This document shows positions 9,140-52,520 of a DNA stretch of 64,000 nt, in pieces. The position numbers and the translations under genes were made by a program. The notes under the pieces were generated by a model. It made no database searches. It was not told the DNA's origin and saw nothing but the letters and a program-made list of their open reading frames with translations. Source of the stretch: Felis catus (Eukaryota); assembly GCF_018350175.1 (NCBI RefSeq), contig NC_058369.1, positions 496,001 to 560,000 of the forward strand. The letters run 5' to 3'. Every line of letters begins with the position of its first letter. Within the stretch, counting starts at the first letter, position 1.

Positions 9140-12125
9140 AATAAGCATTAAAACAATAAATAGACAACAGACAAGAGCGGGGTTCTCCAGTGCGGGGAGA
9201 GCAGGGCGCCGCCAGGGCGTGGGGGCGGGACCGGAAGGAGCCGAGAGCAGGTGTTTGTCGCCAGAGGTGGGGGCGTGTCTGAGCCTGCCAAGGGGGAGCG
9301 GCCCCGCCCTCCCGGAGCTCCCCAGCTGACCGCACCCCGTGTCCTCTGCTCACCCAGCTCCTGTCCAAATATGACCCCCAGAAGGAGGCCGAGCTCCGTA
9401 GCTGGATCGAGGGACTCACCGGCCTCTCGATTGGGCCCGACTTCCAGAAGGGTCTCAAGGACGGCGTTATCTTGTGCACGTGAGTGCGGTGTGGGCAGGT
9501 GCCGGTGGCCCTGACGGTGTGCGCTTCGAGGTCACACGGTCCCAGGGCTGGCTTTCCCCGCAGCGGGTCTCGGGGACCGCTTGTCTTTCGCCTTCTCGCG
9601 TGGCCGCTTGGGGGCGGCTCTCTGGCGGCCAATGTTCTCACCTCACACCCGCCCTCGGGTGGGAGCCTCCGCGTTCCTGGGCCCTTCCTCCCTGCGTCCT
9701 GCTCGGGTGGCTTCGGACATCCCTGGGCGTGCAAGTCCGCAGACTCGCCCCCCACGACAGTGGTTGCCACACTCGGGCCCTCTGCTCCCTTGCGGGTGAA
9801 GATTACATCGCAGGCGGGGAAACTGAGGCCTGGAGTGAGGTTGCTTGGGAAGGCAAGAATGTGGCAAGAGTACAATTTGTTTCTCGGGTCTCTGAGGCTC
9901 CCCTGCGCTAACGGAAGGTCCTATCCCCCCTCCCCAGACTCATGAATAAGCTTCAGCCGGGCTCTGTGCCCAAGATCAACCGCTCCATGCAGAACTGGCA
10001 CCAGGTGAGGCGCCCGCGGGCGGCAGGAGGGGGCAGCTGACCCACCACGTGTGGCGGGTGGGTGGGTGGGCCGGGTGGCCTCACGCTCCTTCTCCCACCT
10101 CCTCCCAGCTGGAAAACCTCTCGAACTTCATCAAGGCCATGGTCAGCTACGGCATGAACCCTGTGGACCTGTTCGAGGCCAACGACCTGTTCGAGAGCGG
10201 GAACATGACCCAGGTGCAGGTGTCCCTTCTGGCCCTGGCCGGGAAGGTGAGGCCCAGAGACGGCACCAGGCACCTCGGGCTGCGTGCTGGACAAGGCAGG
10301 CATGGTCTGCCCAGTCGCAGACTCACGGTCTCAAGGGAGGAGACAAGGAACTAATCTTTTACTTAAAAAATAAAAAACCAAGCTTTATATTTGAGAGCAG
10401 TTTTAGGTTCGCAGCAAAGTTGAGAGGAAGGTGCTGAGATTTGCCGCGTGCCTCCTGGCCCCGCGCGCACGGCCGCCCCATTGGGTGGCACTGTGTCCCT
10501 CAGGGGACATTTGTCACAATCCGTGAAGCTCCGTGGACACGCCATTGTCAGCCAGAGTTCATCCCCGAGTCACTCTGGATAGATTAGAAATACGTTACAT
10601 GTTGTGGGAAACACCCTGAGCACAGGAGGATCCGGCCAGTGTGTGGGGTCTAGTGACCAGGGAGGAGCGAGGGGCAGGTGTCCCTGCCCGGCGAGCTGCT
10701 GGCGGGTCGGGTAGGAGGGGTTGGCAGTGAGGATGCCCCCCGTCCCCCGAGTCCTTGTCCTGAGCTGTCAGACCGCTGGTGGCTGAGGCGCTGGGTGGCT
10801 GGTGGGTGGGGCGGGTGGGAGCCCGTCCCCGTGCCTCTCCCAGAGTTGCACAGTCTGGGCCCGGTGCGAGGGTCTCCGTTGCCCCCACCCCTTTGATGCT
10901 CCCAACACCCCTCCCCTCCAGGCCAAGACGAAGGGGCTGCAGAGCGGCGTGGACATTGGCGTCAAATACTCAGAGAAACAGGAGCGCAACTTTGATGACG
11001 CCACCATGAAGGCGGGCCAGTGCGTCATTGGGCTCCAGGTGGGCTCCCGGTGCCTCTGACCCTGGCCCGCCCCGGTGGGGTGGGGGCTTCTAATGTGACC
11101 CGGGCCCCATGAGCCCCGTGTCCCCTCAAGTCCAGGGCGGGGTCTAGAGGCCTGGCGGGGGCACCTGACCTCTCCTGCCCGCCTCCCTGCAGATGGGCAC
11201 AAACAAGTGTGCCAGCCAGTCGGGCATGACCGCTTATGGGACGAGAAGGCATCTGTATGACCCGAAGAACCACATCCTGCCACCCATGGACCACTCAACT
11301 ATCAGCCTCCAGATGGGCACAAACAAGTGTGCCAGCCAGGTGGGGCTCCCCGGGCCCCACCTCCCTGCGTGCTCTTATCCTTGTCCCCACGCGTGCCTGT
11401 CACTGCGAGTCCCGCTCTGGAGTTCCCTCCGACCTCTCTGCCAGCTTGCCGTGTGTCCCGGGGAAGTCCTGTGCCTCACGCGCCCCACCCCCCCAGGATT
11501 GCCCAGGGGCTCCGAGCAACCCTGGTATCTTCGGATCTGCTGATTGGCACTTTCCTGCCACCTGGCATGGGCCAGTACGAGGGTGTGGGAAGTCTTGGGT
11601 TCTTGGGACGCCTCGGCCCTCACCTGGGGAGCTCCCTGGCCGGCAGGGAGAGCCAGGCCCATACAGTCGGCACAGAGGGCGAGAGAGGGCGTCCAGGCAG
11701 GGCTGGGGGGGACCCACGGGAGCCTGCCCTACGTTCAGACCCAGACGGCGTTGGTGCGGGGGGGGGGGGGGGGGCGGGGGGCGGGGTCAGGGGTGGGTGT
11801 GGCCTCCGTTGGCCCTCCTCCGCCGCCCTCAAGCTGTGTCTCTCCTCCTGTGCAGGTGGGCATGACGGCCCCCGGGACCCGGCGGCACATCTACGACACC
11901 AAGCTGGGGACCGACAAGTGTGACAACTCGTCCCTGTCCCTGCAGATGGGCTACACTCAGGGCGCCAACCAGAGCGGCCAGGTGTTCGGCCTGGGCCGGC
12001 AGATCTATGACGCCAAGTACTGCCCGCAGGGCCCGGCGGCCGATGGGGGTGCGGTGGCTGCAGGCGACGGCCCAGCGGAGGCCCCGGAATACGCCCCCTA
12101 CCGCCAGGAGGAGGCGAGCCACTGA
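5192..12125 (+). CDS. CNN2: Calponin-2, 7 exons, 307 aa
   Basis: Exons 5192-5254, 9358-9479, 9938-10004, 10109-10246, 10922-11038, 11193-11339, 11856-12125; all GT-AG; 924 nt in frame; [23 protein letters not shown] domain, calponin repeats ([11 protein letters not shown]); AATAAA 12849-12854. Confidence 0.98.
7677..7744. repeat. Compound (TG)n(AG)n(CG)n microsatellite in CNN2 intron 1
   Basis: Read directly. Confidence 0.95.
8130..8845 (+). mobile_element. Old L1 (L1MB-like) 3' UTR fragment with a minus-strand SINE inserted (~8605-8772)
   Basis: GGAAGCAACCCAAATGTCCATC, GAAATGTCCAGAA, ATCTCACCACAATTTAAAAA motifs. Confidence 0.75.
8852..9160 (+). mobile_element. Two tandem carnivore SINEs
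   Basis: GGGGCGTCTGGCCGGCTCAGTC and GGGGCGCCTGGGTGGCTCAGTC heads; (TG)(TC)n; A tail. Confidence 0.9.
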
Positions 12126-13950: not shown

Positions 13951-16900
13951 TCCTGTCGGGCGCAGGGAAGGTGGCCAGAGATGAGGGCTGGAAAGATGAG
14001 AGGGTCCCGGGTGCGGATGGGTGGGAGGGAGGCAGGTTCCCTGGGAATTAGGGGGTGAGGGCGGAGTCCACAGTCACCTCCCCCCCCCCCCGCCCCCGGT
14101 GGGTGTGAGCGGCGAGGGGCGGCAGAACCGGGCACTAATTCTGCAGGGCATTGGACTCACCTGACGGGTATTTGCCGACAGACACCTGTAGCCCCTCTCC
14201 GCGTTAGAACTCCGACAAGCCCTCTGCCCCGCTGGAAAAACGGAGGCTTCCCCCACCCCAGCTCCCTCCCGATGTAGAGTCCTCCAGTGGGGGGTCGGGG
14301 GTCCCGGGTCCCAGTTCCAGCCTCGACCGGGGCCTGTGGTAACGCCCTGCCCCCCGGCAGCACAATAATGAAGTAGGCCAGAGCTGGACAGTTGTAACCA
14401 AAGCGGGGATCAGGAATTGCTGGTTCCAGGAGCCGCAGCGCTGCCTCTCCGCCTTACTCTTTCTCTGCGTCTTGTGGTTCTTAACGATAAATGATACACG
14501 AGGGGTGGGTGGAGCTGGGGCCCTGCTCCCGCGGGGTGGCTCTGCCTGTCTCTGGGGGCCTGGTGTGTAAAATGTTCAGCACGGTGAACACTTTGCTGTT
14601 ATCATTGGGTTAGAGCTGGGGCTGGGGGGCGGGGATCTTTCCCAGGACGCGGGATGACGCTGGGGGCCAGGACCTGGCAGCCCCCAAAGGGGCTCAAAGT
14701 GGAGTCGTGACGAGTCAAGCCGAGGCTCCTCCCCCTCAGGAATTAGTTGATAGCCTTTTGGACCCCAGCCCTGCAGCGAGCGACAGCCCAGGCAACCAAT
14801 CAGGTGCGGGGACGGTTTCGGGCAGGGCTCCCATTGGCCCGCTCCGCCCCTCCAGGGACAGAAGGGACCCTTAAATAAGTGCCTGCTGTTCGGCTCCAAG
14901 CAGAGCTTCCAGGAATCCTGCACCCTGAGCTAGAGGAATGAGGTTCAGGGAGGGCCAGGGGTTGCCCGCAGCCACACAGTGCGTCTCAGCCGGACCCTCC
15001 GTCGTGTGCTCTGTGCATTCCCACCATGGCTAATGCTGCTGCTTTGGAAAAATGTCCTGTATCGCAGGAGACAGCCGGTAATGCCAGGACAGACAGATGG
15101 GCCAGGGCGGGGCGGCCCCGGTGTCCCCCACGGTCCCCCACTCCCCCGCCTCTTCTGCCCCTCTCCCAGATCCAGCTCTTGGCGGAGTTGCTGGGGCCTC
15201 TGTTTCTCTTCTTCATCTGGTGGCTGTATGCCACTCCCACCCCCGACTGGAGCAACATGAGTGTAAGCCCCCCCCCCCCCCCCCACCCACCCCCCGCCCA
15301 GGGACCAGGCCCTTTGCGGGGGAGAGGGGAGGCACTGGGTCACCCTATCCACAGGGTCCCGTGAGCGTCAGAGAGCGCGAGTCTGCGTGAGCACTCTGTC
15401 CGCGAGGGTGCAGACACGATGGGGGTGCAGGCAAAGCTCCCCACGCCCAACGTCCCCACAGGCCACTTCCCCAACAAGCCGCTGCCCTCGGCCGGCACCC
15501 TACCCGGTTCCAGGGTCTCATCTGCAGCATGAACGACACCTGCTTCCCGCAGTCCGCGCCCGCCGAGCAGCCAGGTGTCCTCAGCAACTTCAAGGACACC
15601 CTGTGAGCAAGCGGGGGTGGGTGCGGCAGCCACAGGCACGAGGGTGTCTGCCGAGCCTCCACCTGGTGCTCTCTCTGCCCCCAGCGTCCTCTGGCTCCTG
15701 GCAGATGCCCACACCATCCTTGGGGGTGGGGGACGAGAGCCCACAGGATGCTGGCCAGCCTGGGAAAGCTAACGCCAATGCTGAGAGCGGCGGGCGGGGC
15801 AGGTGAGGAGGCCAGGGCCCTTTGGCCGGCAGGGATGCTCTCTGAGCCTCCACCTGCCCGGCCGTGTCACGGGCACAGGGCGGGAGCTGTCTCGGGCCAA
15901 GCTTTGCCTAAACTCGTGCTTCTGTGTGTTCCTCTCCCAGCCCGGCCTCTCCCAAGCGACCGGCTGCGGGACCGCCTGCCCCTGACCACTGAGCTACTGG
16001 GGACACTGCTTCGAGAGATGAGATGGGGTGGGGCGAGACCAGGTGACTCTGGGATGCTGCCCTCAGGGTCCTCAGCCTGACCCTCTGTCACGTGCTCTGC
16101 TCAGCTCCCACCGTGGCCTTCTGGGCTTCCCCATCCTGGCCAGGGGCCTCTGGTTCCGGCTTCCAGGCCTTTTCCTGGGCTGTCCCTGGCTCCTGGAGGG
16201 ACGAGGGACAGGTGCCCAGATGGGCTGTGTCCAGCATGGTGGTGAAGTGTCCGGCCCGTGAGACCTTGCATGAGTCCACGTGCCTCTGGGAGCCTCCGTT
16301 GCCCTATTTGTAAAACAGGATCTTCGGGAGCTTGGCAAACTGCTCCACCCCCGGTGAGAATGCCATCAAGGTCATTATCGCCCTTGTGGGCTTTCTCCCC
16401 AGCAATCCCTGGGGTCTGGGCTGGACCAAACCCAGGAGTCCGTGAAGAGCTTCCTGGAGGCAGCAGAGAACGTGGCCCAGGAAGTAAGCGGCCCACTCAG
16501 CCTCCACCCCAGCCGGGAGGCCGAGAGGGGAAGCTGCCCGGATGGGGAGGTCCTGGGAGGGCTTGGGCAGAAGAGGTGAGGGAGAAGGTGCTCCTGGCAG
16601 GGTCCCTCCCCGGTCGAGGCTGGGTGGCATCCTTGGTGACCTCTCCAGCTCCTGGCACTGCCCGGCCTGGTGGAGCTGTGGGCGCTGCTGCGGAGACCTC
16701 AGGGGACTAGCCGGCCCCTGGAGGCCGTGTCGGAAGTCCTCTTCGGTGCCAAGGGCCCTGGCGTCCCAGGGGGGCCCTCCCTCGACTGGTATGAGGCCAC
16801 CCACCTGAAGGAGTTGGTGGGGCAGGAGCCCACCCCGGGCCTGCCCGACAGCAGCCTGAGTGAGTGACTGACCTCTAGTCTGGGAAGTGGGGCAGTGGGA

Positions 16901-19900
16901 ATGGGGGCAGGGCCTCACGGTCCCCCCATCCCAGGCCCTGCCTGTGCTGAGCTGATGGGGTCGCTGGAAACCCACCCACTGTCCCTCCTGCTCTGGAGGC
17001 GCCTGAAGCTGCTAGTCCTGGGGAAAGTGGCTTCACCAGGCGGCTCACGGCCCAGGTAAGGGCAGGAGTGGCCCTGGGTCCCTCCCTTAACCCAGGGAGG
17101 CTGTGCCAGGCCAGAGGGGGGGCCCTGACCCCGGAGGCTTCCTGAGATGGGTGGTGGACTCCAGGTGTTTGAAGAAGTTAGAGTTTCCCAGATTGCGGGC
17201 AGAGGAACAGAATGCACCAGTGCTCAGAGCCACGGGCTGGAGCAAAACGGGAGAGGTGGGCAGGGGTCCTCAGAGCAGGGGAGGGTCGAGAAAGGGCTGG
17301 CCTGGCATTTATCTTGGTGCCCACCTGCCACAGGGGAACCGGACCTTCTAGAAGCTGGCTCTACTGAAGGGCCTCCAGGAGACGTGGGGTGTGCTGGGAC
17401 CCCAGCTCTTCGACTACTTGAACGACAGTACAAACGCGGCCATGTGGCAGGTTAGGCCAGGTCGGAGGACAGCAGGTTCATCCAGGGCCTCCCTGGGCAC
17501 ATCATCCCTACCCAGGACGTGGGGGCGAGTGTGCAGGCGGCTTGTGGAATCCAGGGGAGCTCAGGGAGGGGGACCCAACTTGGAGCAGTGCCCCATTCCA
17601 AGGAAAGCCTGAGGAGGGCCACAGCTTGGCCCTGCAGAAATCTGATGGCCTAGCTGGGCCGCGCCCTGGGGTCCCCGAGGAAGAAGCGCCGCCTGGTCCT
17701 GAGGTTCAGGGGAGGATCCGGGCACCCAGGACCCACACCCAGGCCCTTCCTCAGTGTGTGACCCTGGACAACCTGGAGGCGGCACCCTCAGAGGCAGCCC
17801 TGATGGCGCGGGCCCTGGAGTTGCTCGCGGAGCACCACTTCTGGGCCGGCATCGTCTTCTGGGGCCCGAGGGACCTCTGGCTCCCCCGCACAGCTCGCGG
17901 GCCCTGGTCACCTGCGCATCAAGATCCGCATGGATATCGACGCCTTCGCGAGAACCAATAAGATCAGGAACAGGTGGGGGTGGACCCGAGCGTGGTGGGC
18001 GGGGCCATCCCCGCCTACAGGAGCCTGGGATGGGTGGAGCCCAGGACCCCTTGGGCCAATTGGGGTCTACTGTGTGTGGGGTCTCCGTGGGGCGTGGCCC
18101 AGGGCTTCCGGGGCGGGGGCAGCACCTCTGGCTCCTTGGACGAGATGCAGGCGGGCACAGACGCGTGTGCTCGAGAGTTAAGGTGGTGATGGGCGGGGCC
18201 GTGGGGCTCCCCGGCCTCTCCCCGGCCTCTCCCCGGCCTCTCCCCGCAGCCCACCACCGTGCCCCATGCAGGTTCTGGGACCCGGGCCCGGCTGCTGACC
18301 CCTTGACAGACCTGCGCTATGTGTGGTGTGGCTCAGCGGCACCGAGGCCCGTGCAGGCCTCTACCCGCAGCAGACGCCCTCCCCGTGCTACGCGGATGAC
18401 GCGTGAGCGCCCCCTCCCTGCGCATCCACCCCCCTTCCGCCGCCAGATCTCGGCTCGGGCTCCTTTTGGAACATTCATGCGGTCGAGGCTGCGAGCCACT
18501 GGTTTGGAAGGACCACTCCCTGTGACCTGTAGCGGGAGGAACCGGGATCCCGGAGGGGCTGGGGTCCCCGGGGGCAGGGAGAACGCGGCCTGTGAGGACA
18601 GCTGGGATCCTAAGGCTGGAACAGGGGTCAGGGGACATCCGGGGCCCAGCTGCGCCTTGCCTTTGGATTTCCAGTGCCCGTCGGGGCTGCGCGGGGCCTC
18701 TGGCCTCCACCGCAGCCGCGCCCCTGCCTCAGGGTCCTGCGTGTACAGAGCCGGTCGCTGCCGCTTCTCCTGACGCCTGGATCCACTCCGTGGCGCCGGC
18801 GGTGAAGGCCGTGGTGCGAGGGAAGGAAAGGAGGCTGCGCCACAAGATGCAGGCCCTGGGGCTCGGCAGCGCGGTGCTGTGGCTCGGCTGGTTCCCCAGC
18901 TGCCACTCGCCCTTCCTCGGCAGCACGGCGCTGCTCGTGCTGGTGACCAAGGTGCGCACGCCTCGGCCTTCCCCGCTGCGGGGTGGCTGCGCGCGCGCGG
19001 GCCCCTGGGCAAATCCCGGAGCCTGAGGAGCCGTATTCGCCCTTCGCAGCTCGGGGACATCCTCCCCCATAGCCACCCGGCCGTGGTCTTCTTGTTCTTG
19101 GCGGCTTTCGCCGTGGCCACCGTGGTCCAGAGCTTCCTTCTGAGCGCCCGCTTCCCCCGCGCCAACCTGGCGGCCGCGTGCGAGGCCTGGCCTACTTCGT
19201 GCTCTGTCCACCCTACGTGCTGTGCGTGGCCTGGCGAGACCGGCTGCCTGCGGGTGGTCTCTGGCTGTGGTGAGACCGGGGGTGGCCGGGTGCGGGGGGG
19301 CCCTGCGCTGCGTTTGCTCGCTGACGCCCCTGTCCCCACCGCAGTCTTCTGTCGCCTGTGGGCTCTGGGTTCGGCTGCGAGAGCCTGGCGCTGCCGAAGG
19401 AGCAGGGTGAAGGCGCCCAGTGGCACAGGGCGGGCACCGGGCCCGCCCCTGGCGTCTTCAGCCCGGCCCAGGTCTCTGGAATCCTGCTGCTCGACGCTGT
19501 GCTCTGTGGCCTCGCCACTGGGTACCTAGAGGCCATCTCCCCGGTTGGGTGGGGACGGAGGGTGGGGTAGGGACACAGGGCAGGGGCGTACCTGCAGAAG
19601 GGCGGCCGGGCTGAGGGCCTTGGCGAGCCGGGGCAGGGCTGAGGGGCCGCTTGGTGCCTGGAGGCCGTCCTGGGCGGCTCTTCCTGGCATCTAGGCCCGG
19701 GTGGCTGCGTTCGAGGGACGGCCCGAGGCAGGCCGATGGGGTCCTGGCCGGGCCCTCCCACCTGGATGCCCTGATCCCGGGCGCGTGGTCAGAAGCTGGC
19801 ACACCCCGGGGTGATGAGCTCAAGGGGTAACAGCACCGCTCCTCCCAGGCCAGTATGGGATCCCCAAACCGTGGAACTTTCCCTTTCGGAGAAGCTATTG

Positions 19901-21629
19901 GTTTGGACCTCGTTCTCCCAAGGGCTCCACCCCACCTCCCACCCCGAAGGACCCAGAGGGTGAGGCGCGAGGAGACCTGATGGCCGCTTCCCTGTCTGTA
20001 TGCCCCATGTCCCCCAAAGGCCCAGGTTCCTACAGAGCCCGGTCCTCTGCACACCTCCACCCCCCCAGGCTCCGTGGGGCTCCCCTAACGCCCATAGGCC
20101 CCAGCCCTGATGGGTCCCTGACTCCACGGGCCAGCGTTTGCGGCCTCCCAGGTCCCGCAGAGCCCCCCCCCTACAAAGGGCTCCCGTGGTCGAGCCTGCC
20201 CTCCTCCCGCAGTGCCGACGGAAGAGGTCCCACCCGGCTGGATTCCGGGGGTCTCCGTTCGGGGCCTGGAGAAACGCTTTCCTGGCAACCCCCAGCCAGC
20301 CCTGCGTGGGCTCAGCCTGGACTGCTGCCAGGGCCAGATCACCGCCTTGCCGGGCCACAACGGAGACGGCAAGGCCACCATGCTGTGGGCGGTTGCCACT
20401 GTCCTAATTTCCCCCCGGCCTCAGCTGGCACGTCTGCTCAATGGGAGAGGTGTCTGGGGTCTCCACAGGGAAGTCGGGACCCCCCATCCACTTGGGGTAC
20501 ACGGCGGATAGATAACCGTGTTCTCTGAGCCTCAGTTTTCCTCCTTTATAGAACGGGGACATAACACACCTCGAGTCTGGGCACACAGTAGGTGCCTTTT
20601 AAGTGCTTTTGCTCCTTCTCTGGGGGTCTCCGTTTCCTCCTCTGAAGGGGCAGCTGCTCTGAGACCCCTTCACCCCCAGGTCCCTACTGTGTGGCCTCTT
20701 TCCACCCACTGGTGGCTCTGCCCGCATCCTGGGCCACGATGTCCAGTCCAGAATGGAAGCCGTCCGGCCCCACCTGGGCGCCTGCCCGCAATACGACGTG
20801 CTGTCTGACGTGCGTCTCGGCGGGCCCGGGGGTGCAGCGTCAGGGGTGGCGGGGCTGGGTGTTCTTGGGGCTCTGCCTGCCACGGGGGCCGTTGTTCCAG
20901 CGCGTGGCTGCAGGCTGACCTTGGAGGAGCACATCTGGGCGGTCGACGGGCCTGAGTGCAGGACCTGTGAGCCCCGAGGAGGCCCGTCTACTGCAGGACG
21001 TGGGGCTTGTCCCCACGCGTTGTGCGCAGACCCGCCGCCTCTCTGGTGAGCCCAGCCGGGGAGGAGCATCCGGGTCTGTGGAAATGGTGCTGGGAAGGGG
21101 GTCGGGACTTTACCCCAAGGGCCGTGCGAAGCCAGAGGAGACACCAGATCCGGGAGGCCCAGAGGGGCTAGGCACGGAGATCCAGGGGGTGGGGAAAGGG
21201 GGCACGGGGAAGGGACGCAGCCCTGCCCAAGACTGAGGGGACGCTGCTGGGACCCCCGCACCTGCCTCTGCCCAGGTGGGACGCAGCAGAAGCTTTCAGT
21301 GGCCATCACCTTTGTGGGCGGCTCCCGGGTTGTCATTCTGGATGAACCCACGGCTGGTGTCGACCCTGCTTCCCGCTGCAGCATCTGGGAGCTGCTGCTC
21401 AAATACCGAGAAGGTAGGAGTTGGGGGAGGCACGAGGTTCCCCTAGATTCCGATTCAGCGGCCAGAAAATGTTTCTGACGAAGAAGTGCTTGGAGTGGGG
21501 TTTTGAGGGATGAATAGGAGTTGGATGCCAAACAGGGCAGCGCGGCTGGCGGGAACGGGCTGGGAGAGCCTGAGGGAAGGGCCAGTGGGGGGCTTGACTC
21601 AGGGCAACAGGCTCCGTAACTCCAGCCCG

Positions 21630-21663
21630 GACCCCTGACCCCTGACCCCTGACCCCTGACCCC
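21630..21663. repeat. (GACCCCT)n heptamer repeat
   Basis: About 4.5 copies read directly. Confidence 0.9.
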
Positions 21664-23403
21664 ATGTGAACTGCGGGCCCGATCTCCGGTCACCTCTTGC
21701 CCTCAGGTGCTTAACCCTCACCTCCTCTGCCTGCAGAGACAGGCTCCCGTGGGTCACTCCAGCCCCTTCCCCGAGGACAGCTGGCTGCGTCCCGGTTGAC
21801 GCGCCCCCGTCCACCCAGGTCCCGCCCAGCTGCTGTCGCTCGTGCGGTGCCTGGTGCCCGGGGCGCGGCTGGTGAAGGAGCTGCCCTACGGGTCTCCCCC
21901 AGCAGCACACCCGGGGAGGAGGCAGGCGCACGCAGAGGGCCCCACGGCGTCTTGGGCGCGGGCGACTCCTGTGGGGTCCCGGGCTGAGCCCCCGCTCTGT
22001 CTCCCCAGGTCTTCCCGAAGGCGGTAGAGGCTTGCGCTGCGGACGTGGACCCAGAGGACACGGCCACAGGTCCCTGTCCTTGACCCCGCGCCTTGGTTCA
22101 GAGTGAGACTTGACTTTACGGCGAGGCCCCAGCCTTGGTTGCATCTCAAGGCGCAGCCTCGACCTCCACCCCTGATTCCCGACCCCCTCTGTCTGCGACC
22201 CAGGACCTTGACTCAGACCCTCGGCTGAACGGCGACCCTCAAACCTGAACGCACCCCTGATGGCCCCACAGATCACCAGCCACAAGCGGCACCTGGGCGC
22301 GGGCCTCGCTCCCCCAGACGTGACCTCACGGCTCAAGGTTCTGCCGGAAGAGTCGGCCCTGGAGAACGGGGAGCTAGGTGAGTTGTCCCGCCTCGAGTCT
22401 GCGGTCCCTCCCTGTCCCCCGGAGCCTGCGCACTGACCCTCCCATCCCCCACAGCGACGGCTGCCCCGGAAACACGGGTCCTGCAGGGCTTCGGGCCAGA
22501 CCCCGCGGGCCGGGGACAGGGCTGCGCGCTGTCTGCTTCTCAAGCGCTTTCTGCTTGCCTGCCGCGGCCGCCGTGGCCCGTTGACGCAGGTGAGGGGGAG
22601 CGGGCGCCAGAGGAGGGTGCGCGGGCAGCCCTGGGTGCCTGTTTTCTACTCCCGTCACCCACTCAGCGGTGAACCCGAGAAGTCTCCACCAGTCTGAGCA
22701 CCTTTACTGAGAGCACCGGGGAGCCACGGATGATTGTAGAGCAGGAGCAGGAAGGGTCCCGGGCAGCCCGGGGGGTGCGCAGGGAGGGCAGCTGCTGGGC
22801 CCGTCCTGCAGATGGTGCTGCCTGTCCTCTTTGTGGGCCCGGTGCCGGTGCTCAGTCTCCTCGCGCCTCCTGACGGGCCGGGCCGGAACCTGTCCCGACT
22901 TCCTGGTCAAGACCCACCCCCGCCTGGTGCGCCAGGGGCCAGCCGCCACCTGCACGCGTTCAGTTTGCCCGGAGGAGGGGGCCGGCGCTCCGGACGGCTC
23001 TCCGTGCCCCCCCACCCCCCGCCCCTGCATCTCCCGCAGCCTGAAGACCAAGAAGTGGGTGAACGAGGTCAGGTGAGCAGGGCCGTTCCCACGCCCCCTG
23101 CCCACCCGCTAGGAGGCTTTCCTGCCCCGCCCTCCCTGAGCCCACTGCCCCGCAGGTATGGGGGCTTCTCCCTGGGGGGGCCGAGACCCAGGCCTGCCCT
23201 CAGGGCAAGAGGTGAGCCACTCAGTGTGGGGGCTGCTGGTGCTGCTGAACCCCCGACCCGGCGGGGCCCCCTCGACCTTGTCCTGAGCAACCCCACAGCC
23301 TGGGCTCACCGAGGACAGCCTCAAGGTGGGCTCTCGGGTGAGGGGGCGGGCAGGTGGCTGGTGGGGCAGGTCTCACCGCGGCAATCTGACTCCTCGGCCT
23401 CGA

Positions 23404-23448
23404 CCCCACCCCCACCCCCACCCCCACCCCCACCCTCACCCCCACCCC
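23404..23448. repeat. (CCCCCA)n hexamer repeat at a dead ABCA7 acceptor
   Basis: Read directly; ends ...CCCCGG|ATCTGG where AG is expected. Confidence 0.85.
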
Positions 23449-24550
23449 GGATCTGGTTCAACAACAAGGGCTGACACGCCATGGTGGCCTTCATCGGCAG
23501 GGCCAACAACGCTCTCCTACGTGCCCACCTGCCCCCAGGCCCTGCCCGCCACGCCCACAGCATCACCACGCTCAGCCACCCCGAGGCTGCGCTGAGTCCC
23601 TATGCCCCGCCCCCCACCTCGGCCTTTCTGTGCTCTGCCACTCCCCTGCTGAGTACGCGCACAGGGGCGGAGGCTCTCTGCTCGCCAGGCCCAGACAGCG
23701 GGACGTCGTCAGGCTCCCCCGGCAGCCCACGCATCGTCACTGCGTCCGCTGGGACCCCACCACGCGGTCTGCGCGTCTGCCCGGCTGGCAGTCCAGCCCC
23801 CACCGGCCCCACACGGCCCCGCTCGTCTCCCCGTGGATCCTTGTCCCGTCGGCGTGGGCAGAGGTGTCCTCTGAGGCGCCCGTGCACCCTTGCCCGCAGG
23901 ACGGCCACCTCGGTGGACGTGCCCGTCTCCACCTGAGCGGTCTTCGCCGTGTCTTTCGTCCCAGCCAGCGTCACCCTTGTTCTCATCAAGGAGCCGGGCC
24001 TCTGCAGTTTATGGGGGGCCCACCTCCCACTCTTCACTGGCTCAGCAACTTTCTCTGGGACGTGGTGCTGGTGGGGGGGAGGTCCGGCTGCCTCTCATTG
24101 CTGCCCCTTTGCTACCCCTTCCCGCCAGGCGCTTGTCGGGATGGTCTGGGTGAAGTCTGGGGATCTGGGAGACTGCACCTCTGGCCACCTGAAACGCGGG
24201 GGGTTGGATGGGGCCCAGGGGACCTGCAAACTGATGGGCGTAACTCCGCCTCCGACGCAGTGGAACTACCTGGTGCCAGCGTGCGTGGCGGCGCTCACCT
24301 TTCTGGCTTCCAGCAGAGGGCGTACGTGGCTCCCGCCAACCCGCCTGCCCTCCTGCTGCTGTTACTGCTCTACGGGTGAGGCCTCCGCCCCCCTCGGAGC
24401 CCGTTCTTGCCACCCTACCCCGACGCCTGATGCCATCGAGGGAGCCAGGGCTCTGTCCCAGCTCCCGAGGACAGAAGAGATCCGAGGTGGTCCCAAGTGG
24501 AATCTAATTTAAGGACAGGCTGAGGTGGCCTTAAAAGCTCATCTTGTCCT

Positions 24551-24695
24551 GGGGCACCTGGCTGGCTCAGGGGGTAGCGTGTGCGACTCTTGACCTTGGG
24601 GTCGTGAGTTCAAGCCCCACGTTGAGGGTAGAGTTTAGTTTAAAATTTTTTTAATGTTTATTCATTTTCGAGAGAGCACAAGCAGGGGAGGAGCA

Positions 24696-24742
<47 letters not shown>

Positions 24743-25095
24743 TGAAGCAGGCTCCAGGCTCCGAGCTGTCAGCACAGAGCCCGACGCGGGGCTCGAACCC
24801 ACGAACTGCGAAATCGTGACCTGAGCCGAAGCCGGATGCTCAACTGACTGAGCCACCCAGGTGTCCCAAGGGTAGAGTTGACTTTAAAACAAACAAACAA
24901 AACAACTCTTTTGTCTTTTGTTTCTAATTTTTAAAAGTTTTTTTTAAGAATTTTATTTTACAGCGAGAGAGTGCAAGCAGAGGGAGAGGGAGAGAATCTC
25001 AAGCAGGCTCCGCACCCAGCACGGAGCCCCATGCGACCCCGGGGTCGTGATCTGAGTCCAAAACAAGACTTAGACCCTTAACCGACTGGATACAG
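24551..25095. mobile_element. SINE cluster: + SINE interrupted by a - SINE with (CA)n, then another - SINE
   Basis: SINE heads and tails; AGGGTAGAGTT duplicated at ~24625 and ~24870 (target-site duplication). Confidence 0.85.
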
Positions 25096-25900
25096 AGGAC
25101 TCCCTCTTAGGGGTACTCAGCCTGCTGTCTGGGTGGTTACCCAGTGACCCCTGTTGCCCCCTCAGCTGGTCGATCACGCCAGTCGTGTGCCCGGCACGGC
25201 CTGTGTGGTGCTCACCTGTGTCAACCTCTTCGTCGGCATCAACGGCGGCACGGCCACCTTCGTGCTCCAATACTTCTCTGGTCGGGTGGCGCTCTGCAAG
25301 TCTGGGCCTCAGCTCCGGACGCACGTCCCTCTTCCTGTCCCTGAGCAGAAGCTGCAGGAAATGAGCCGCATCCGGAAAAAGGGTCTTCCTGGTGCTCCCC
25401 CACTTCTGCCTGGGCCGGGGGCGCGTTGACATGGCGTGAGACCAGGCCGTGGCTGACGCCTTCGAGCGCTTAGGTGAGAACTTCCCTCGAGGTGGGGGAG
25501 TGCCACCCAAGTCGATAACGCAGGGTAGGGACAAACAGCAGCTCCCAGGAAGGGAACTAGAGGGTTAGGTGGCCCCAAGTTTGGGCCAAGTTAGAGATAC
25601 GGCAAAGTAGTTGTAAAAGCCACTTATGTCCTGGGTCATATCACAAGAGGTCCTAACAAAGGAGATGGTAATACCACCGTGGCCTGTACCAGTCAGACCT
25701 CAGTTGAGTGGCCCATTCAGTTCTTGGTCTTTTCCCTTAAAAGCCCGAGGTGACCTGGGTGGGGATGGGCCCAGAAACCAAGCACCTCCCCCTGTGACCC
25801 AGTTCGTCCTTCCTGTCAACACAGGAGACGGGCAGTTCCAGTCCCCCCTGCGCTGGGAGGAGGTTGGTAAGAACCTCTTGGCCGTGGTGGTACAGGGGCC

Positions 25901-25940
25901 CCTCCTCCTCCTCCTCCTCCTCCTCCTCCTCCTCCTCCTC
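25901..25940 (+). repeat. (CTC)n trinucleotide repeat inside an ABCA7 pseudo-exon
   Basis: About 13 CTC units after GKNLLAVVVQGP. Confidence 0.95.
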
Positions 25941-28900
25941 ATGCTCTTGGCGACCGCCTGCTGCCACGGTCAGTGGGGGCTGGGTAAGGGTGGGAGGGGC
26001 CGGGGCTGGCTCTGGGCCCACTGATCTCTCTCCCGTCCTCAGACCCCAGCTGAGGTTGCTGCCCCCCCGCCCCGCCCCGGGGCAGGAGGACGAGGAGGTG
26101 GCCCGTGTCGGGAGCGGGTGGCCCGAGGGGCCACCGAGGGGGACGTGCTGGTGTCGAGAGACCTGACCGAGGTGGGCACAGTGCTGGGTTGGGGGCTCCC
26201 GCTGGCCCACCCACCCTCTCAGGGACCTGAACACCTCCCAGGCGTGCTGTGGGCAGAGGGACGCCAGCTGTCGATCCCCCCTGGTGAGCTGAGAGTCCAG
26301 GGTGAAGGTCCTGAGGCAGGGGCAGTGAGGGGCTGCCCTACTGGGCGCCCACTGCCCTTTACTGAACAACTGAGCACAGGTGCCCGCGCGCTGAGCAACT
26401 ACTGACTGCCAGCGCTTGAGCCCCTGTTTCGGGCCAGCAAACGCTCGTTAAGCTCCTACTGCATGCTTTCGCTTACCGAGTCCTACTGTGTGTAGTAAGG
26501 TCTTGGGCCCTACGGAGACCAAGCCGATGATTATTGAGCACCTATGGGGTGGGGTGCCCACACACGTGGCCGCAACGTTAATCGAATACCTACTACGTTT
26601 GAGAACCAGTGGTACTGCTGAGTCTGAGGTGTGTGTGTGTGTGTGTGTGTGACCCGAGTAGTGCTCACAGCCGGCATTTATCGAGCACGCGCTTTGCACC
26701 AGTTCACATCCACGCAGCTGCTTGTGCCAGCCCACGTGCTGAGTGCTACGTATCGGTCACGCGCGGGGGGCCGACGCGGCTGGAAGCCAGCGTGGAGCGT
26801 CGGTGTCCGTCGCAGTCATTCCGCACTCGCTGGGTGTCTGTCTGTCGGGAGCCGTTCCGCTATTTACGGAGCGCTTGACAGGGTACCTGCTACGCCGGAA
26901 TTGTTTAAATTCATCCCGCGTGCCACCAACCGTTCCCGGCTAAGTGACAGCGTTATGTTCACCTGCTCGCCCTCGGGATCTGCCCCCGGGGAGCCCCCTT
27001 GCCACGGCCGTCCTGCAGAAACTTGGAACCCCACCCCGGGATTAGGGACAGTGGGGCAGGGATTTGAGACCTTGCTGAGTGCCGTCTGCGGGGCACCCGC
27101 GGTGTTTCGGGCCCGTGGGAGTGAACGGAGCAGGGAAGACGTCCACGTTTCGCAAGCTGGCGGGGGACGCGCTGCCCGGTGGTGGCGAGGCTGTGCCGGC
27201 TGGCTACAGGTGAGCGGGCTCGGGCCCCCAAGCCTGTGTGCGTCCCCACGCGGCGCTCTCCCAGGCATGACCGCCCACACCCCCGCATGTGGACCCGGCC
27301 CTGAGACGCCCCCCACCCGTCTCTTACCATGGTGCTCCAGGGTGGGTGAGCCTTGAGGCCCCTGTTTGCCACCCCCCCCCCCCGAGTGGCCAGGGCCTAG
27401 CCAATTTCCTGAGCCCCCCGTCCCCCATCCCCCATTGACAGCATGGCCGGGAACCTTCCACTGCGCACCACCACAGGGGCTAATGCCCTCAGTCGGACGC
27501 TGTCTTCGAGCTGCTGGCCGGCCACCAGCACCTGGAACTCTTCGCCCGAAGCTCAGGTTCCCCAGGTGACCTTCCCCTCCCTCCTTCCAGGATCACAGCC
27601 CTACCCTGGCTCCCTTGGCCCTGCCCCGAGTCAGGGTCCGCCTCTCTCCACTAGCCGCCCCCCAGCTCCCTTGCTCTGTACCTGCCCCCTTCCTACCGCA
27701 CCTGACTTTCCCCGGCCATGACCCCACCGCCCACTGAGGGCTTCCCGAACTTCTGGCCAGGTCACATCCCCCCTCTCTCACCCTGGCTCCACTCTCTTTA
27801 TTTACCTTCCCCCATTTTTACCCTAGTCCCCCTCCCGTGTACTGCCCCCCCCCACCCGCATCTGGTCCCTCCCCCTCCCGTGTACTGCCCCCCCTCCCTC
27901 CCTCCCGCCCCGCCCCACAGACAGCGAGCTTGGGCCCGGCGCGCCTGGGGCTCCTGAAGTTTCGGACCCACCTGAGGGCACCTACAGCGGAGGCAACAAG
28001 AGGAAGCTGGCGACAGCCGTGACGCTGGTGGGGGACCCGGCTGCGGTCTTTCTGGTGCGTGGGGGCGGGCCTGGGGGAGAGGGCTCGGGCTCGGCTGATG
28101 AGGGCATCGCCCCCTGAAGCCCCGAGGACGAGTCCACCACGGGCACGGACCCCGCTCCCGGCGCTTTCTCTGGAGTAGCCTCCCTCCCGGCCGTGGAGCG
28201 GGAGGGCCGCTCCGTGGTGCTTACCGCACCACAGGTGGGTCCCCAGCACCCGGGGCCCAGGGTCAAGGTGGGTCAGGCCCCAGCGGGAGGCCGTCAGAGC
28301 TGGAGCGGCCCCGACATTTGGGAGGAGGGCACGCCGGGGACGGTGATGCCCGGTCCCGGGGGCCCGAGCGGGCTGGGCTGGGGGGGGGCAGGGGGGGGCG
28401 GGCCCAGGTGGCCCCAGCCTGGCGGGAGCTGATGGCGCCGGGCCCCGGCTGCAAGGGAGAGTGTGTGGCGCTCCGCACGCGCCCGGCCATCAGGGTGACG
28501 GACGGGCGGGTCCGCTGTCCGGGCGGCGCGCAGCCCCTCGAGAGCAGGTGAGCAGGGCCACAAGAGCGCAGACACGGCCACGCGACGCCCACCTGGCTCT
28601 ACCCTGAGCGGAGGCGAGGCTCGAGGGCTGGCGGCGGGGCCGAACGGAACCAAGACGGGTCCCAGGGCTGCCGGACGAGGGTGGGTCCCGGGAAGGGGCG
28701 GGCCCGGGAGGGAGGAGGGCGGGGCCTGGAGCGGGCGCGGCCCGAGGGGGCGGGGCTAGGGAAGGGATGGGCCCACAGGCGGGCGAGGCCGGCAGGAGGA
28801 GGGGGGCGTCCCGAGGGGCCAGGTCTCGGGGGGCAGGGCCAGAGTGAGCTGGAGGGTGGTGTGGGCGGGCCTCGGGCGTGTCCAGCAGCCCCCCGGCCCC

Positions 28901-29445
28901 GCCCACCCACCCACCCGGGTTTGGCGCCGGCCACACGCTGACCCTGCGGGGCCAGCAGCGCGGTCCGAGTTGGCGGAGGCCTTCGAGGCGGCCGCGTTCC
29001 CGGGGGCCGCCCGCGGTTCCAGGTGCCGCCGGGAGGGCGCTGCGCCCTGGCTCGCGTCTTCGGAGAGCTGGCGTGGCGCGGGGAGGAGCGCGGCGGGCAC
29101 TTCTCAGGGAGCCAGACCACGTTGGCGCGGGCGCCCGCCGCGCCTGGACGGGGCTGAGGATAAGTGGGGCTGGGGGCCGGGCCGGGGGCTGACCGCCCCT
29201 CCGGCCGCCCTCCCCCGGTGCTCCTGTACTTCTCCAAGGACCAGGGGGAAGAGGAGGGGGACGGGTAGGAGGCGGGAGTGGGGGCAGGCCTCGTGACACG
29301 CCCACAGCACCCCGACTCCTCACTGGGCTCTTCGAGGACCCCAGCACCTCCTGTGTGGTGTTGCTGGGAGACTCCGGCAGCCCAGTCGCTGGCTCTCAGA
29401 GGATCCACCGCCCTGGAGGAAAAAGAGAACTCATGGGGTGAAACC

Positions 29446-29616
29446 GCGCGTGTGCGTGCGTGTGTGTGTGTGCGTGTGTGTGTGTGCGCACGCGCGCGCG
29501 TGCGTGCACACAGGCTGCAGGTCAGTCCAAACACGGCTCTCCATATGCGTCTGGACACTGGCCCCTGTTCCCCGAGTGTCCCCCACGTGTCCCCCACGTG
29601 TCCCCCACGTGTCCCC
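29446..29616. repeat. Alternating purine-pyrimidine (TG/CG)n tract plus ~4x 11-bp GTGTCCCCCAC repeat
   Basis: Read directly at 29446-29512 and 29576-29616. Confidence 0.9.
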
Positions 29617-30974
29617 CGACACTGGTGCAATTTTGTAGGGTACATGTGAGAGTCTGGCTGTGGCCGACTGGACCCCCAGCTCTGGGGGCCTCTGGTGGAC
29701 TGGGGACGGGGGGGTCTCACGTGCAAGGGTGGCCTTCTATAGAGCCTGGACACTGGTCACTGGCCCCCACGTGCCCATGTGGGCCTGGCGGCTGAGGGCA
29801 GTACCTAGGAGAGCCTGGTGGGGAGGAGGAGGTCAAGGCTGGGGAATGTTCCAGAAGACTTGGAAAAGCCCACTGGGGGTGGCCCAGACCTCAGGTGTCC
29901 TGACCAGGCCAGAAGTCTGCCAGCCAGCCCTCACCCCTGAAACTAGGCCCCAGAGCAATGGGTGCTAGGATCCTCAAGGGGCTTCCCAGCTGGGTGTGTG
30001 GATGGACCCGGGCCTGGAGAGGCGGGTTTGGCACCAGAGGCTGTGGTCTTCGGGCCCTTTGCCCTGTAGACCTGCCCCTCCCACCAGAGGTCAGTGGGGT
30101 CAGTGTTGGGGAGGCTAAGGGGTTGTTGGGGTTTGGGGATGGGGTGGGGCTCCAGAAGTGAGAAGAATGGGGGAGGGGAGAAGCCTCTGACTGGTGAGGG
30201 GTCTTCAAGAGAAAAGGTGGTTGGAGGAGGGGAGCGGGGGTCTGGGGAGGGGGGAAGAAGGCAGGGGTCCCTACACGTGGCTGGTCTCGTGGCTGGGTAG
30301 CCTCAGGCTTGTTTCCAAAGACGCCTCGTCAGCGCTGCTGCTTGGCAAGTGTGATGGTCTGTGTGTGTCCCCGGACTGTGGGAATAGGGCTGGGGACGGT
30401 GGCCTGGTGTGCCCTGTGCTGCCCGGTGGCCAGAGGAGGGAGGACGGGCGGCCTGGATAGCGTGTGTCCAAGCTCAGGGTCTGAGAGGGAAGCCCTGGCT
30501 TGTCCGTTCCACGTGCGGGCTTCATGACGTCCGAGCACGTGTCCTTGTGCACGCGTGTGTGCGTACTCCTGGCCGCGCCTGGGCGTCTGCGTGTGCCCTC
30601 GCCACGCACCGGGGCATCGGTGCAGGGCGCAGGCACCCTGGCCAGCACATGCGCAGAGCTCCCGAAAGCGGAAGCTGGGGGTGGCACCCGGGACCCCACC
30701 TTCAAGCCCACTGTGAGGAGGGCCAGGCTGAGGCCAGGGAGGGTGGGGGGCAGGTCTGCGTCTCTGTCACTCACCGCCTCCGGAGGCCTTTTCCTGTCGG
30801 AGGGAGGGCCCGCCAATGAGGGCTGGGCCTGTCACGTGGGCCTGACAGCTGGGGAGGGGGTGGCCGGCGGCAATGTGGCCCCGAGGCAGCCAGGAGGGAG
30901 AGCTACAGCCTTGAGACCCCCAGCCTGCGTGACCCCGGCCCGCCTGTCTTGGGCCACTGGGCCCAGGTCCCACC

Positions 30975-36900: not shown

Positions 36901-39900
36901 AGCTGTAGAGGCCACTGGACTTAGTTCACTAAATCCTACTGCTACCTTCCCGTCACCGCTGGGCTGTTGGTGTTTCAGACACCAGCGCTGTGACACCTCG
37001 CGTCCATGTCTCGGACCTGCGACCGGACACGTATCTCTGACGGGTGCCCACAGCGGGACGGCTGGGGGAGGGTGTGAACGTGTGAGCCTCTCCTGAGCTC
37101 CCTCTGCTTCCCTCCTCGAAACACTTGTTTCCTGCCCTTTGCTCATTTTGGGCTGGATGATGCCTTCTTTCTTTCTTACTGATTTGTCAGAGCTCTTGTA
37201 CTAGAGATCTCAGCCCTTGCTGATGTGAGTTACGGACCCCGCCCCCCCCCCCCCCCCCCCCCGCCCGGTTTATCGTCTTTGACTCTTGACTCTACCTTTG
37301 GCCTGTTTTGCCAGCCAGAAGCCTGAGCGTGTCAGCGGTGGCCTTTTCTTGTGTGGTTTCTGGGTCTGTGTCCCGTGTTCAAGGCCTTCCCACAGCGAAA
37401 TGGTTTTCAGACCCTCTCCACGTTTCCCCTGGTATTTGCACAAGCTAGTTTCTGTACGTTTAAGCCTCTGACAGCGCAGGCTGGGGCGTGGCCCCCAGAA
37501 GACTCGCCATGTTTCTGACCAACCCTCAGGGCGCCCGGCTTCCTGCCGGGGCGGCTTTACACCTCTCCTGCGAAAGAGGGGAAGTGAGAGACGGGAGGGT
37601 GGCCACCACTCTGGCGGGGGCGGGTGGAGGTCTCAGCTGCGGGGGCTGTGATGTGGGCACACCGGACGCCCGTTCCTCCCAGGGTCCGTAGGCAGGCGTC
37701 CCCTCCTGTTCTCCTGTCCACTCTTGGGTAGGGCCTCTGTCTGCCCCGCGGGGCCGTGGGCACAAGATGTGTGGGTGGCTGATGGGGGTGGTTGGGGACA
37801 GGGGCCGGGAGGCGGAGCTCAGCCGGAGCCCGGCTCTGGACTGGCGCCCTCACCCTCCTGCCCGCAGCAAGAGGCCGAGTCCAACCTTCGCAAGGCCAAG
37901 CAGGGCTACGGGCAGCGCTGTGAGGACCACAGCAAGGCCCGCTTCCTGGCTGCCAAGGCCGAGGAGGAGCAGGCAGGCACGGGGCCCGGGGCCGCGGCCT
38001 CCAAGACCCTGGACAAGCGGAGGCGTCTGGAGGAGGAGGCCAAGAACAAGGTGAGCGCAGACAAGGAGGAGACCCTGGCGGCAGAACCCCGCGGCGCCGG
38101 CCCAGGCTGCGTGTCCCGTGGGAACGCGTCCCAGTCCGTTCTGCCGCCTCGGTTCCTGCGGCCGGCCTGGCGACGTCCCGGGGGCCGAGGCCGGGCTGAG
38201 GCATCTCTGGGCACCGCTCTGCCCCCGTGCAGGCGGAGGAGGCCATGGCCACTTACCGCACGTGTGTGGCCGATGCCAAGACGCAGAAGCAGGAGCTGGA
38301 GGACGCCAAGGTGACGGTGCTGCGGCAGATCCAGGAGGTCATTCGGCAGAGCGACCAGACCATCAAGTCGGTGCGGCCCCGCGCTCTGGCCACGGGGGGC
38401 AGGGGGGCCCTGGGCCCGGTCGGTGCGGCTTACCCACCCGCCCGCCCGCCCGCCCGCAGGCCACCATCTCCTACTACCAGATGATGCACATGCAGACGGC
38501 CCCGCTGCCCGTGCACTTCCAGATGCTGTGCGAGAGCAGCAAGCTGTACGACCCCGGCCAGCAGTACGCCTCCCACGTGTGCCAGCTGCAGCGGGGCGAT
38601 GAGCCGGACGTGCGCTACGACTTCGAGCCCTACGTCTCCACCAACACCTGGTACGGCCAGCGGCACGGGCCCTGCGGGGACCGGGCTTCCCGCCTGCAGT
38701 GCCTCCGTGACCCCCCGTCCCGTCCCGTCCCCTCCCTCTGGCTCGGTCCACCAGGTCTCCGGTCATGCGCACCCGGAAGGGTAGCCTCAACGTCAGCGAC
38801 GCCGTGGGGACAGAGGCCGCTGGCGGTCCCGAGGAGGAAAGCGGGCCCACCGAGGGGGCGCTGGCCAAGGACCGCAGGGGTGAGCGCCTGGCGCAGTGCG
38901 GGGTGGGTGTGGCTTCCCCGCGGCCCCCACTGGAGACGCCTCCTTCTGCAGGTGGGCGTGGCCACCAGGTGCACAAGTCGTGGCCCAGCAGCACCGCGGA
39001 CTCCGACGGCAGCCTGGACCCCGGCCCTGGCTCAGGTGAGGAGGCCCCCGCCTGCCGGGCGTCTGGGGCAGCCGGGGGGGGGCGGTGATGGGACGCTGTG
39101 GCGGCCGTGAGCCCTCTGGGGAGGGTCCCTCGTGGCTCGGGGTGCCTGACGCCGGTCTCCCGTGCAGGGGACTTCAAGAAGCTGCAGCGGATGTCGTCCG
39201 GCGAGGAGCTGGCGGACCAGGACGGCAGCGCAGAGTCATCAGCCTTCGAGCAGGGTGAGGGGCCCCCGCGCCCGGTGTCAGGGGGAGGCCAGTGGGCCCG
39301 GTGCTGGCCTGCGGCCGCGAGGCTCACTGCTCGCCCCGCCCCGCAGCCGACCTCAACGGCATGGCCCCCGAGCTGCCGGTGGCCGTGCCCAGCGGGCCCT
39401 TCCGCCACGTGGGGCTGTCCAAGGCGGCGCGAACGCACCGGCTGCGGAAGCTGCGCACGCCAGCCAAGTGCAGGGAGTGCAACAGCTACGTCTACTTCCA
39501 GGGCGCTGAGTGCGAGGAGGTGGGTCGAGCTCGGGGGACGGCTGGGGCTACGTGCCGGGGGGGGGGGGGGGGTCCGCTCAGCCGGGAACAGAGGGGAGCA
39601 TCTGGAGACCGGAGGGCCCCGGGGGAGTGCCCAAGGCCCGGAGGCAGGACCGCCGGGCTGCGGGCAGGAAAAGCGAGGCGTCTGGAAGGAAGGAGCTGGG
39701 GTGGCAGGCACCCGCCTAGGCAGGCGTGTCCCCCAGCCGAGGAGACAGAGTGAGCCGGGAGCGGTGGCGCTTCTGGAGACGCCACGAGGGAGTGAGGCTC
39801 AGGAGGGCGCTGGGGGGGGGGTCGCTGAGCCGCCGCCCGCCGCAGTGCTGCCTGGCCTGCCACAAGAAGTGCCTGGAGACGCTGGCCATCCAGTGCGGCC

Positions 39901-47439: not shown

Positions 47440-52520
<5,081 letters not shown>

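Follow-up and report, generated by a model that had tools for sequence, protein, structure and literature searches.

ABCA7, as known from work in mouse and human, exports phospholipids to apolipoproteins and supports phagocytosis; human loss-of-function alleles raise the risk of Alzheimer's disease, for which ABCA7 counts as one of the better-supported human genes, and the phenotypes of Abca7 knockout mice are mild. Here we analyse the ABCA7 locus in a 64-kb stretch of the domestic cat genome (Felis catus, contig NC_058369.1, positions 496,001–560,000), hereafter the window, in which positions are counted from the first letter. The window contains no N, and its G+C content is 54–72%. Remnants of ABCA7 occupy positions 15012–29363 of the + strand, as about 40 coding exons in protein order with introns of 60–800 nt. 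We hold it very probable (roughly 0.93) that this locus of a feliform carnivore is an orthologous unitary (unprocessed) pseudogene from which no ABCA7 protein can be made, because the start codon has been lost and frameshifts or stops occur in every domain; the animal would thus be an ABCA7 knockout by nature.

Three close counterparts differ from the feline locus in different ways. Best match, exon order and neighbours all mark human ABCA7 (structures 8edw and 8eop) as the same gene, and its risk alleles carry stops or frameshifts, the same class of lesion as in the window. However, those alleles are rare and heterozygous, with a single lesion each, whereas the window holds a wreck with some fifty lesions. 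The Abca7 knockout mouse lacks the protein entirely, as would the lineage studied here, but that knockout is engineered and recent in a species that keeps the gene, whereas a lineage with an ancient loss would have had time to compensate. The ABCA7 genes of Caniformia (dingo, red fox, European mink and black bear) are orthologous, colinear over the whole length and sister to the window in a protein tree; they have open frames of 2036–2075 residues, while the window remnants are interrupted throughout.

The identity of the locus was established exon by exon, using single exon pieces or retrieved proteins in the database searches and no spliced gene model. In a PDB search, window positions 20215–20385 scored 83.8 bits with residues 797–851 of human ABCA7, compared with 45.2 for ABCA4 and 27 for ABCA1, and positions 23475–23585 matched residues 1481–1517 with 53.1 bits, against 13.6 for ABCA4. 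The remnants resemble ABCA7 more closely than its paralogues ABCA1 and ABCA4, with 65–72% identity to six mammalian ABCA7 proteins. In global protein-to-genome alignments with these six references, the exons are colinear from the N- to the C-terminus across 15012–29363, which bears out the syntenic order given in the original prediction, and they lie on the same strand between CNN2 and a GMIP/ARHGAP45-type gene. The human ABCA7 neighbourhood has the same gene order (CNN2, ARHGAP45, POLR2E), and because the neighbour order in the window equals it, we read the window as the orthologous ABCA7 locus. Approximately 30 introns, on whose positions at least four references agree and most of which are still bounded by GT..AG, have been kept, so the remnant is not a retrocopy.

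Suitable references were reached stepwise. With one intact exon as the query, the hits were confined to fragments and to remote ABCA proteins of the lamprey type, which served as distant references, and a region-limited search with the lamprey protein P0015 returned only fish ABCA1-like proteins. Through a turtle ABCA7 fragment (P0021) we reached a partial ABCA7 of mink (P0227) and from there near-full-length orthologues, of which six were used: dingo (P0231), red fox (P0274), European mink (P0230), black bear (P0232), pangolin and cow. ABCA7 protein models are open over 2036–2078 residues in these and many other species, with near-full-length models also in raccoon dog, and the outgroup proteins are presumably functional, judging from their open frames. 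No cetacean was found among the best 120 ABCA7 relatives, and the sole whale model met, a 1467-residue 'ABCA7' of Balaenoptera acutorostrata (P0214), is truncated and reads through intron-like, out-of-frame stretches; it may reflect an independent decay in whales or merely a poor gene model.

Lesions were called by aligning each of the six references to window positions 14801–29700 with a purpose-written global protein-to-genome aligner, which models codon matches, frameshifts, codon insertions, affine residue deletions and introns in all three phases, rewarding GT..AG ends. Of the reference residues, 1829–1888 were paired with a codon (at the 65–72% identity given above) and 137–186 were left unpaired; the same damage was recovered with all six references. 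A frameshift was regarded as reproduced when it was called with four to six references, or with every reference containing the exon.

Altogether, the remnant carries about 30 frameshifting indels, six premature stops and multi-codon deletions shared by four to six of the six references, that is, several independent lesions that disrupt the reading frame, as in a unitary pseudogene. Reproduced frameshifts are spread over the whole length: in the N-terminal part and the first transmembrane domain (TMD1) at 15215, 15506, ~15728, 17030, ~17875, 18333, 18776 and 19182; in the first nucleotide-binding domain (NBD1) and linker at 20939, 22005 and 22896; in the second extracellular domain (ECD2) and second transmembrane domain (TMD2) at 23175, 23269, 23997, 24306, 25185, 25376 and 25935; and in the second nucleotide-binding domain (NBD2) and C-terminus at 26107, 26260, 27446, ~27954, 28154, 28183, 28229, 28950, 29012 and ~29310. 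The in-frame stops are TAG at 17349, TGA at 23472, 23934 and 25437, TAA at 27481 and TAG at 29266; five of the six fall inside tblastn alignments to lamprey, ABCA1/4/7-like and turtle proteins, at residues conserved there. Four to six references agree on the position of non-canonical splice boundaries at 16018, 23449–23450, 23594, 28450–28451, 28917–28918, 29131 and 29216–29217, and GC donors are present at 20812 and 22938. The deletions include two of 17 nt, one of 27 nt, one of 15 codons and one of about 125 ECD2 codons. Lesions at the start codon, in exons 2–4, at 26260–26290 and at 27446–27548 were seen directly in the DNA. Among the motifs checked, only the Walker A of NBD2 is still intact; the Walker A (GxxGxGK[ST]) and signature of NBD1 are altered and most of its H-loop exon is unrecognizable, so the set of NBD1 motifs found in a functional ABC transporter is not preserved.

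The original prediction, made from the letters alone, held that ABCA7 is dead at its syntenic place. The ABCA7-best scores, the colinear remnants, the CNN2 and ARHGAP45-type flanks and the many lesions confirm this. It had listed frameshifts near 15217 and 15506, an internal deletion in the FWDPGP exon near 18335, a GKT to GKA change in Walker A, an AG to GG acceptor near 23449, nonsense codons at 23472, 23934 and 25437, and a GT to CT donor with a deletion at about 26275–26290. Every one of these lesions is real and lies at the place named or no more than a few bases away from it, but they make up only about a fifth of the total damage, which had thus been understated. An exact look-up of nine lesion-spanning open reading frames (ORFs) in the protein collection found none of them and added no independent support.

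The N-terminal part and TMD1 are represented by the following remnants.

15012–15077, + strand: exon 1, aligned to MAFWT(H/Q)LMLLLWKN... of the six orthologues
15170–15262, + strand: exon 2, frameshifted by a 1-nt deletion at 15215–15217 (6/6 references)
15462–15602, + strand: exon 3, 1-nt deletion at 15506 turning TGG into GG (6/6 references)
15685–15803, + strand: exon 4, frame shifted in a G-rich run at 15723–15739 (5/6 references)
15941–16019, + strand: exon 5, donor AT for GT at 16018–16019 (exon end by four references)
16403–16859, + strand: two remnants, 16403–16483 and 16649–16859, free of ORF-breaking lesions
16935–17055, + strand: remnant lacking six codons and 1 nt at ~17027–17031, frameshifted (6/6 references)
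17334–17450, + strand: remnant with in-frame TAG at 17349–17351, NRTF*KLALL (6/6 references; P0015 and P0021 span the stop)
17743–17973, + strand: remnant with a frameshift near 17875
18272–18402, + strand: FWDPGP exon, 15–17 codons and one base missing at 18327–18335 (6/6 references and P0021)
18733–18951, + strand: first TMD1 exon, frameshifted by a 4-nt loss at 18776 (6/6 references)
19050–19263, + strand: TMD1 remnant, 1-nt deletion at 19182–19183 (4/4 references holding the exon)
19342–19543, + strand: TMD1 remnant, one base apparently gone at the exon end or donor (19543–19544), next exon out of phase

The ancestral initiator codon at 15012–15014 reads TGT instead of ATG, has no in-frame ATG upstream, and is followed by a first in-frame Met only at residue 8. 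The ATG at 15026, previously proposed as the ABCA7 start, does not lie in the reading frame; the start that was lost is the ancestral one at 15012–15014. In exon 2, the DNA reads ATC-TGGTG where the orthologues code for I-L-V; a 32-base, mostly C run (15268–15299, + strand) lies a few bases past the donor of this exon. The alignment of the turtle fragment changes frame at the shortened TGG of exon 3, and the G-rich run of exon 4 measures about 17 nt, compared with 12 nt in the orthologues. The P0015 alignment to the TMD1 exon at 19050–19263 shifts frame after one residue. The base loss at 19543–19544 would account for the shifted acceptor required in all six alignments.

The remnants of NBD1, the linker and ECD2 are distributed as follows.

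20213–20384, + strand: NBD1 Walker A exon, PDB alignment to human ABCA7 797–851
20680–21045, + strand: two NBD1 remnants, donor GC at 20812, frameshift and two codons gone at ~20936–20939 (6/6 references)
21276–21415, + strand: NBD1 signature and Walker B exon, frame open, signature LSGGTQQKL, not LSGGMQRKL
21416–22070, + strand: wrecked NBD1 H-loop exon and R1 regulatory domain (details vary by reference), many codons gone and several frameshifts, including 22005
22274–22589, + strand: linker exons before TMD2, frameshifts at ~22490–22531
22809–22937, + strand: first TMD2 helix (22809–22877) joined straight to the NLTGRNLS-DFLVKTYPRLVRQ exon, +1 frameshift at 22896
23040–23325, + strand: ECD2 remnants, 23040–23072 intact, 23156–23325 with frameshifts at 23175, 23269 and ~23307
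23449–23595, + strand: IWFNNKGW exon, acceptor GG, TGA at 23472, 27-nt deletion after 23582, donor lost at 23594

The altered Walker A motif of NBD1 reads GHNGDGKATML, where human ABCA7 has GHNGAGKTTTL. A TGA at 21985 was rejected as a stop, as the frameshift at 22005 explains the alignment better. About 125 ECD2 codons, amounting to several exons, have been deleted between the first TMD2 helix and the NLTGRNLS-DFLVKTYPRLVRQ exon, and a tblastn search with the missing segment of the mink protein found no match elsewhere in the window. Positions 22735–22870 were considered as ECD2 and rejected, since another frame fits the first helix of TMD2 much more closely. In the IWFNNKGW exon, GG stands at 23449–23450, before IWFNNKG, and the TGA at 23472 takes the place of Trp1480 in human numbering, just before His1481.

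Downstream, TMD2, NBD2 and the C-terminus are covered by a further set of remnants.

23900–24064, + strand: TMD2 remnant, TGA at 23934, 13-nt deletion at ~23994–24001
24261–24375, + strand: TMD2 remnant, 1-nt deletion at 24306 (6/6 references)
25166–25285, + strand: TMD2 remnant lacking eight codons and 1 nt at ~25185 (6/6 references)
25346–25473, + strand: TMD2 remnant, 1-nt insertion at ~25376–25381, TGA at 25437 (6/6 references)
25825–26171, + strand: two remnants, (CCT)13 Leu-run expansion, frameshift at 25935, 1-nt deletion at 26107
26242–26290, + strand: exon preceding that of the NBD2 Walker A, extra G at 26260, 17-nt deletion near 26277
27101–27209, + strand: NBD2 Walker A exon, GVNGAGKTS intact
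27442–27565, + strand: NBD2 remnant, 1-nt deletion at 27446, 17-nt deletion at ~27548 (DNA; 6/6 references)
27904–28234, + strand: NBD2 signature and Walker B exons, frameshifts at ~27954, 28154, 28183 and 28229 (6/6 references)
28450–28547, + strand: NBD2 remnant, acceptor TG for AG at 28450–28451 (6/6 references)
28917–29132, + strand: R2 domain remnant, acceptor GG at 28917–28918, donor lost at 29131
29216–29363, + strand: last exon, acceptor CG at 29216–29217, TAG at 29266, frameshift at ~29308

The TGA at 23934 replaces a conserved Cys, the sequence around the TGA at 25437 reads DMA*DQ, and the TAA at 27481 replaces a Tyr (TAC>TAA). At the lost donor before the Walker A exon, the DNA shows CT at 26289–26290 together with the 17-nt deletion. 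Two placements made by the aligner, CLGIPPG at 26971–26992 and EAQVAQ at 27904, were rejected, the DNA showing 17-nt deletions at ~26277 and ~27548, respectively. Of the two frameshifts in the R2 domain remnant (28950 and 29012), the latter is accompanied by eight missing codons, and ABCA7 homology stops at ...EDPSTSCVVL. In a TMD2-proximal helix, a perfect (CCT)13 run at 25901–25940 (+ strand) has replaced the short Leu/Phe stretch by a long run of Leu, which looks like a repeat expansion once constraint was gone. The 790-nt intron of this part of the remnant contains the tRNA-like head of a tRNA-derived short interspersed element (SINE; 24777–24862, − strand; tRNA-Arg tcg in ARAGORN) beside an (AC)21 microsatellite (24697–24739); the element fits a carnivore SINE and, with the position of the window in the protein tree, is in keeping with a carnivore that is not a caniform.

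The genes around the remnant were sampled by exon.

9283–11056, + strand: CNN2 (calponin-2), upstream neighbour, Pfam CH domain matches, sampled exons conserved
38200–40942, + strand: GMIP/ARHGAP45-type RhoGAP gene, downstream neighbour, GMIP-like FCH and RhoGAP exons (Pfam)
48405–48557, − strand: RPB5 (POLR2E) exon, further downstream, 29/31 residues matching

A stretch of 47 residues in CNN2 is identical to the solved CH domain of human calponin-2 (PDB search), and three consecutive exons of the RhoGAP gene tile the RhoGAP profile without a gap (19–67, 66–120 and 120–147). Overall, the neighbour exons sampled in this G+C-rich window are 94–100% identical to solved orthologues. The earlier description of the neighbours as clean is supported by the sampled CNN2, RPB5 and RhoGAP exons only. 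At the left edge, positions 2–235 (+ strand) encode the C-terminal end of a gammaretrovirus-type envelope transmembrane protein (Pfam TLV_coat, 513–560 of 560, E 6.5e-21), an endogenous retrovirus remnant cut by the window boundary.

The rate of change was estimated from 1429 columns in which at least four references pick the same window codon and all six have a residue. Over these sites, the window differs from caniforms at 26–29%, compared with 4–16% among the caniforms themselves. In a JTT+G4 tree, the window is sister to Caniformia, as expected of a feliform, and its branch (0.316) is about 2.9 times longer than the path from the carnivore node to each caniform (0.08–0.12), which points to long neutral decay. 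We assume that caniforms and feliforms split about 55 million years (My) ago and that the functional rate equals the caniform rate. With an omega of 0.1–0.3, the 1.9 branch units by which the window exceeds the functional expectation would then correspond to neutral evolution for 20–80% of those ~55 My, or ~12–45 My. Approximately 45 indel events in about 5 kb would give 15–35 My, if one indel occurs per about eight substitutions and substitutions accumulate at 2–4 × 10^-9 per site per year. The loss was proposed to be old, with which the long branch, the roughly fifty lesions and the estimate of 12–45 My, rough as it is, all agree. By these rough estimates, ABCA7 would have been lost as early as, or earlier than, the radiation of living cats, and the loss may reach back into early Feliformia. 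Given such an old decay, the loss is probably common to all living cats, and it possibly extends to other feliforms.

A pseudogene could be mimicked by assembly or consensus errors in a gene that is intact in the animal. The DNA of the region is very G+C-rich (59–72%), some 1-nt indels lie in short homopolymers, such as the G runs at 15723–15739 and the A run at 25376–25381, and the lesions are read from the letters of an assembly. Such errors would not, however, be expected to produce six stops by base substitution, at least seven splice sites altered by substitution, deletions of 13, 17, 17, 27, ~46 and several hundred or more bases, the replacement of conserved and catalytic motifs, and amino acid divergence raised about 2.9-fold over 1429 codons, in the same window in which neighbour exons are 94–100% identical to solved orthologues. 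Because of the substitution-type stops, the long branch and the conserved neighbour exons, we regard assembly error as ruled out for practical purposes and its residual probability as minimal, in agreement with what had been argued before from the clean flanks. The remnant could also be a decayed duplicate or a relocated gene's old copy, with a functional ABCA7 elsewhere in the genome, and our sequence covers 64 kb only. Against this, the remnant holds the ancestral place, with its introns, between CNN2 and the ARHGAP45-type gene. In mammals with an annotated ABCA7, the gene is not known to have a second copy. Moreover, the best 120 relatives of mink ABCA7 included six caniform species and no feliform, although only proteins of 656–2087 residues were eligible and several caniform families were absent too. 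We therefore consider a second, functional copy very unlikely.

It could be argued, as the data come from one felid genome, that the loss is young and private to the species or the individual. The number of separate lesions (some fifty), a branch about three times the caniform length, and the 12–45 My obtained from the substitution excess and the indel density speak against a recent event, and we deem it very unlikely. Several points do weigh against an old, orthologous pseudogene. All lesion letters come from this one assembly, the copy number is that of the 64-kb window, and lesion details between 21416 and 22900 vary between reference alignments. The dating is rough and depends on the assumed omega and indel rates, how old and how widespread the loss is has been deduced from it, and the size limit and the missing caniform families make the lack of feliforms among the mink relatives a weak argument.

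An orthologous unitary pseudogene remains the reading that we favour. Under it, selection on ABCA7 would have been lost in an ancestor roughly 12–45 My ago, and the gene would have drifted neutrally since, accumulating substitutions at about three times the rate of dogs, bears and mustelids. Its roles would presumably have been taken by ABCA1 or other transporters, or would have been dispensable in the lineage. The odds are about even that the loss goes back to the stem of the cat family, or further back in Feliformia, which would make every living cat a long-compensated natural knockout of a major Alzheimer-risk gene of humans; hyaenas, mongooses and civets would then perhaps be knockouts as well.

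Full-text searches of the literature turned up no description of an ABCA7 loss, whether in cats or in another carnivore, although annotations and large gene-loss tables may hold it silently. Where reviews put forward cats and dogs as models of Alzheimer-type ageing, they name ABCA7 only as a human risk gene. As a probably lineage-specific unitary pseudogene, the loss is an ordinary kind of event that affects a gene of unusual medical interest. The locus deserves a pseudogene label in annotation rather than that of a low-quality protein, and expression or association studies built on the expectation of an ABCA7 in cats would find nothing. Since cats have been proposed as spontaneous models of brain ageing, users of these models should know that ABCA7 is absent. 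Any link between the loss and feline amyloid and tau pathology, carnivorous diet or lipid handling is speculation. If the loss is old, however, the lineage would offer a natural system for phagocytosis and for brain lipid and amyloid handling without ABCA7, in which one could ask about the bearing of the loss on changes in amyloid and tau in aged cats. It would also show what compensates for the missing transporter, for example ABCA1 or other ABCA genes, and how microglia and macrophages phagocytose without it.

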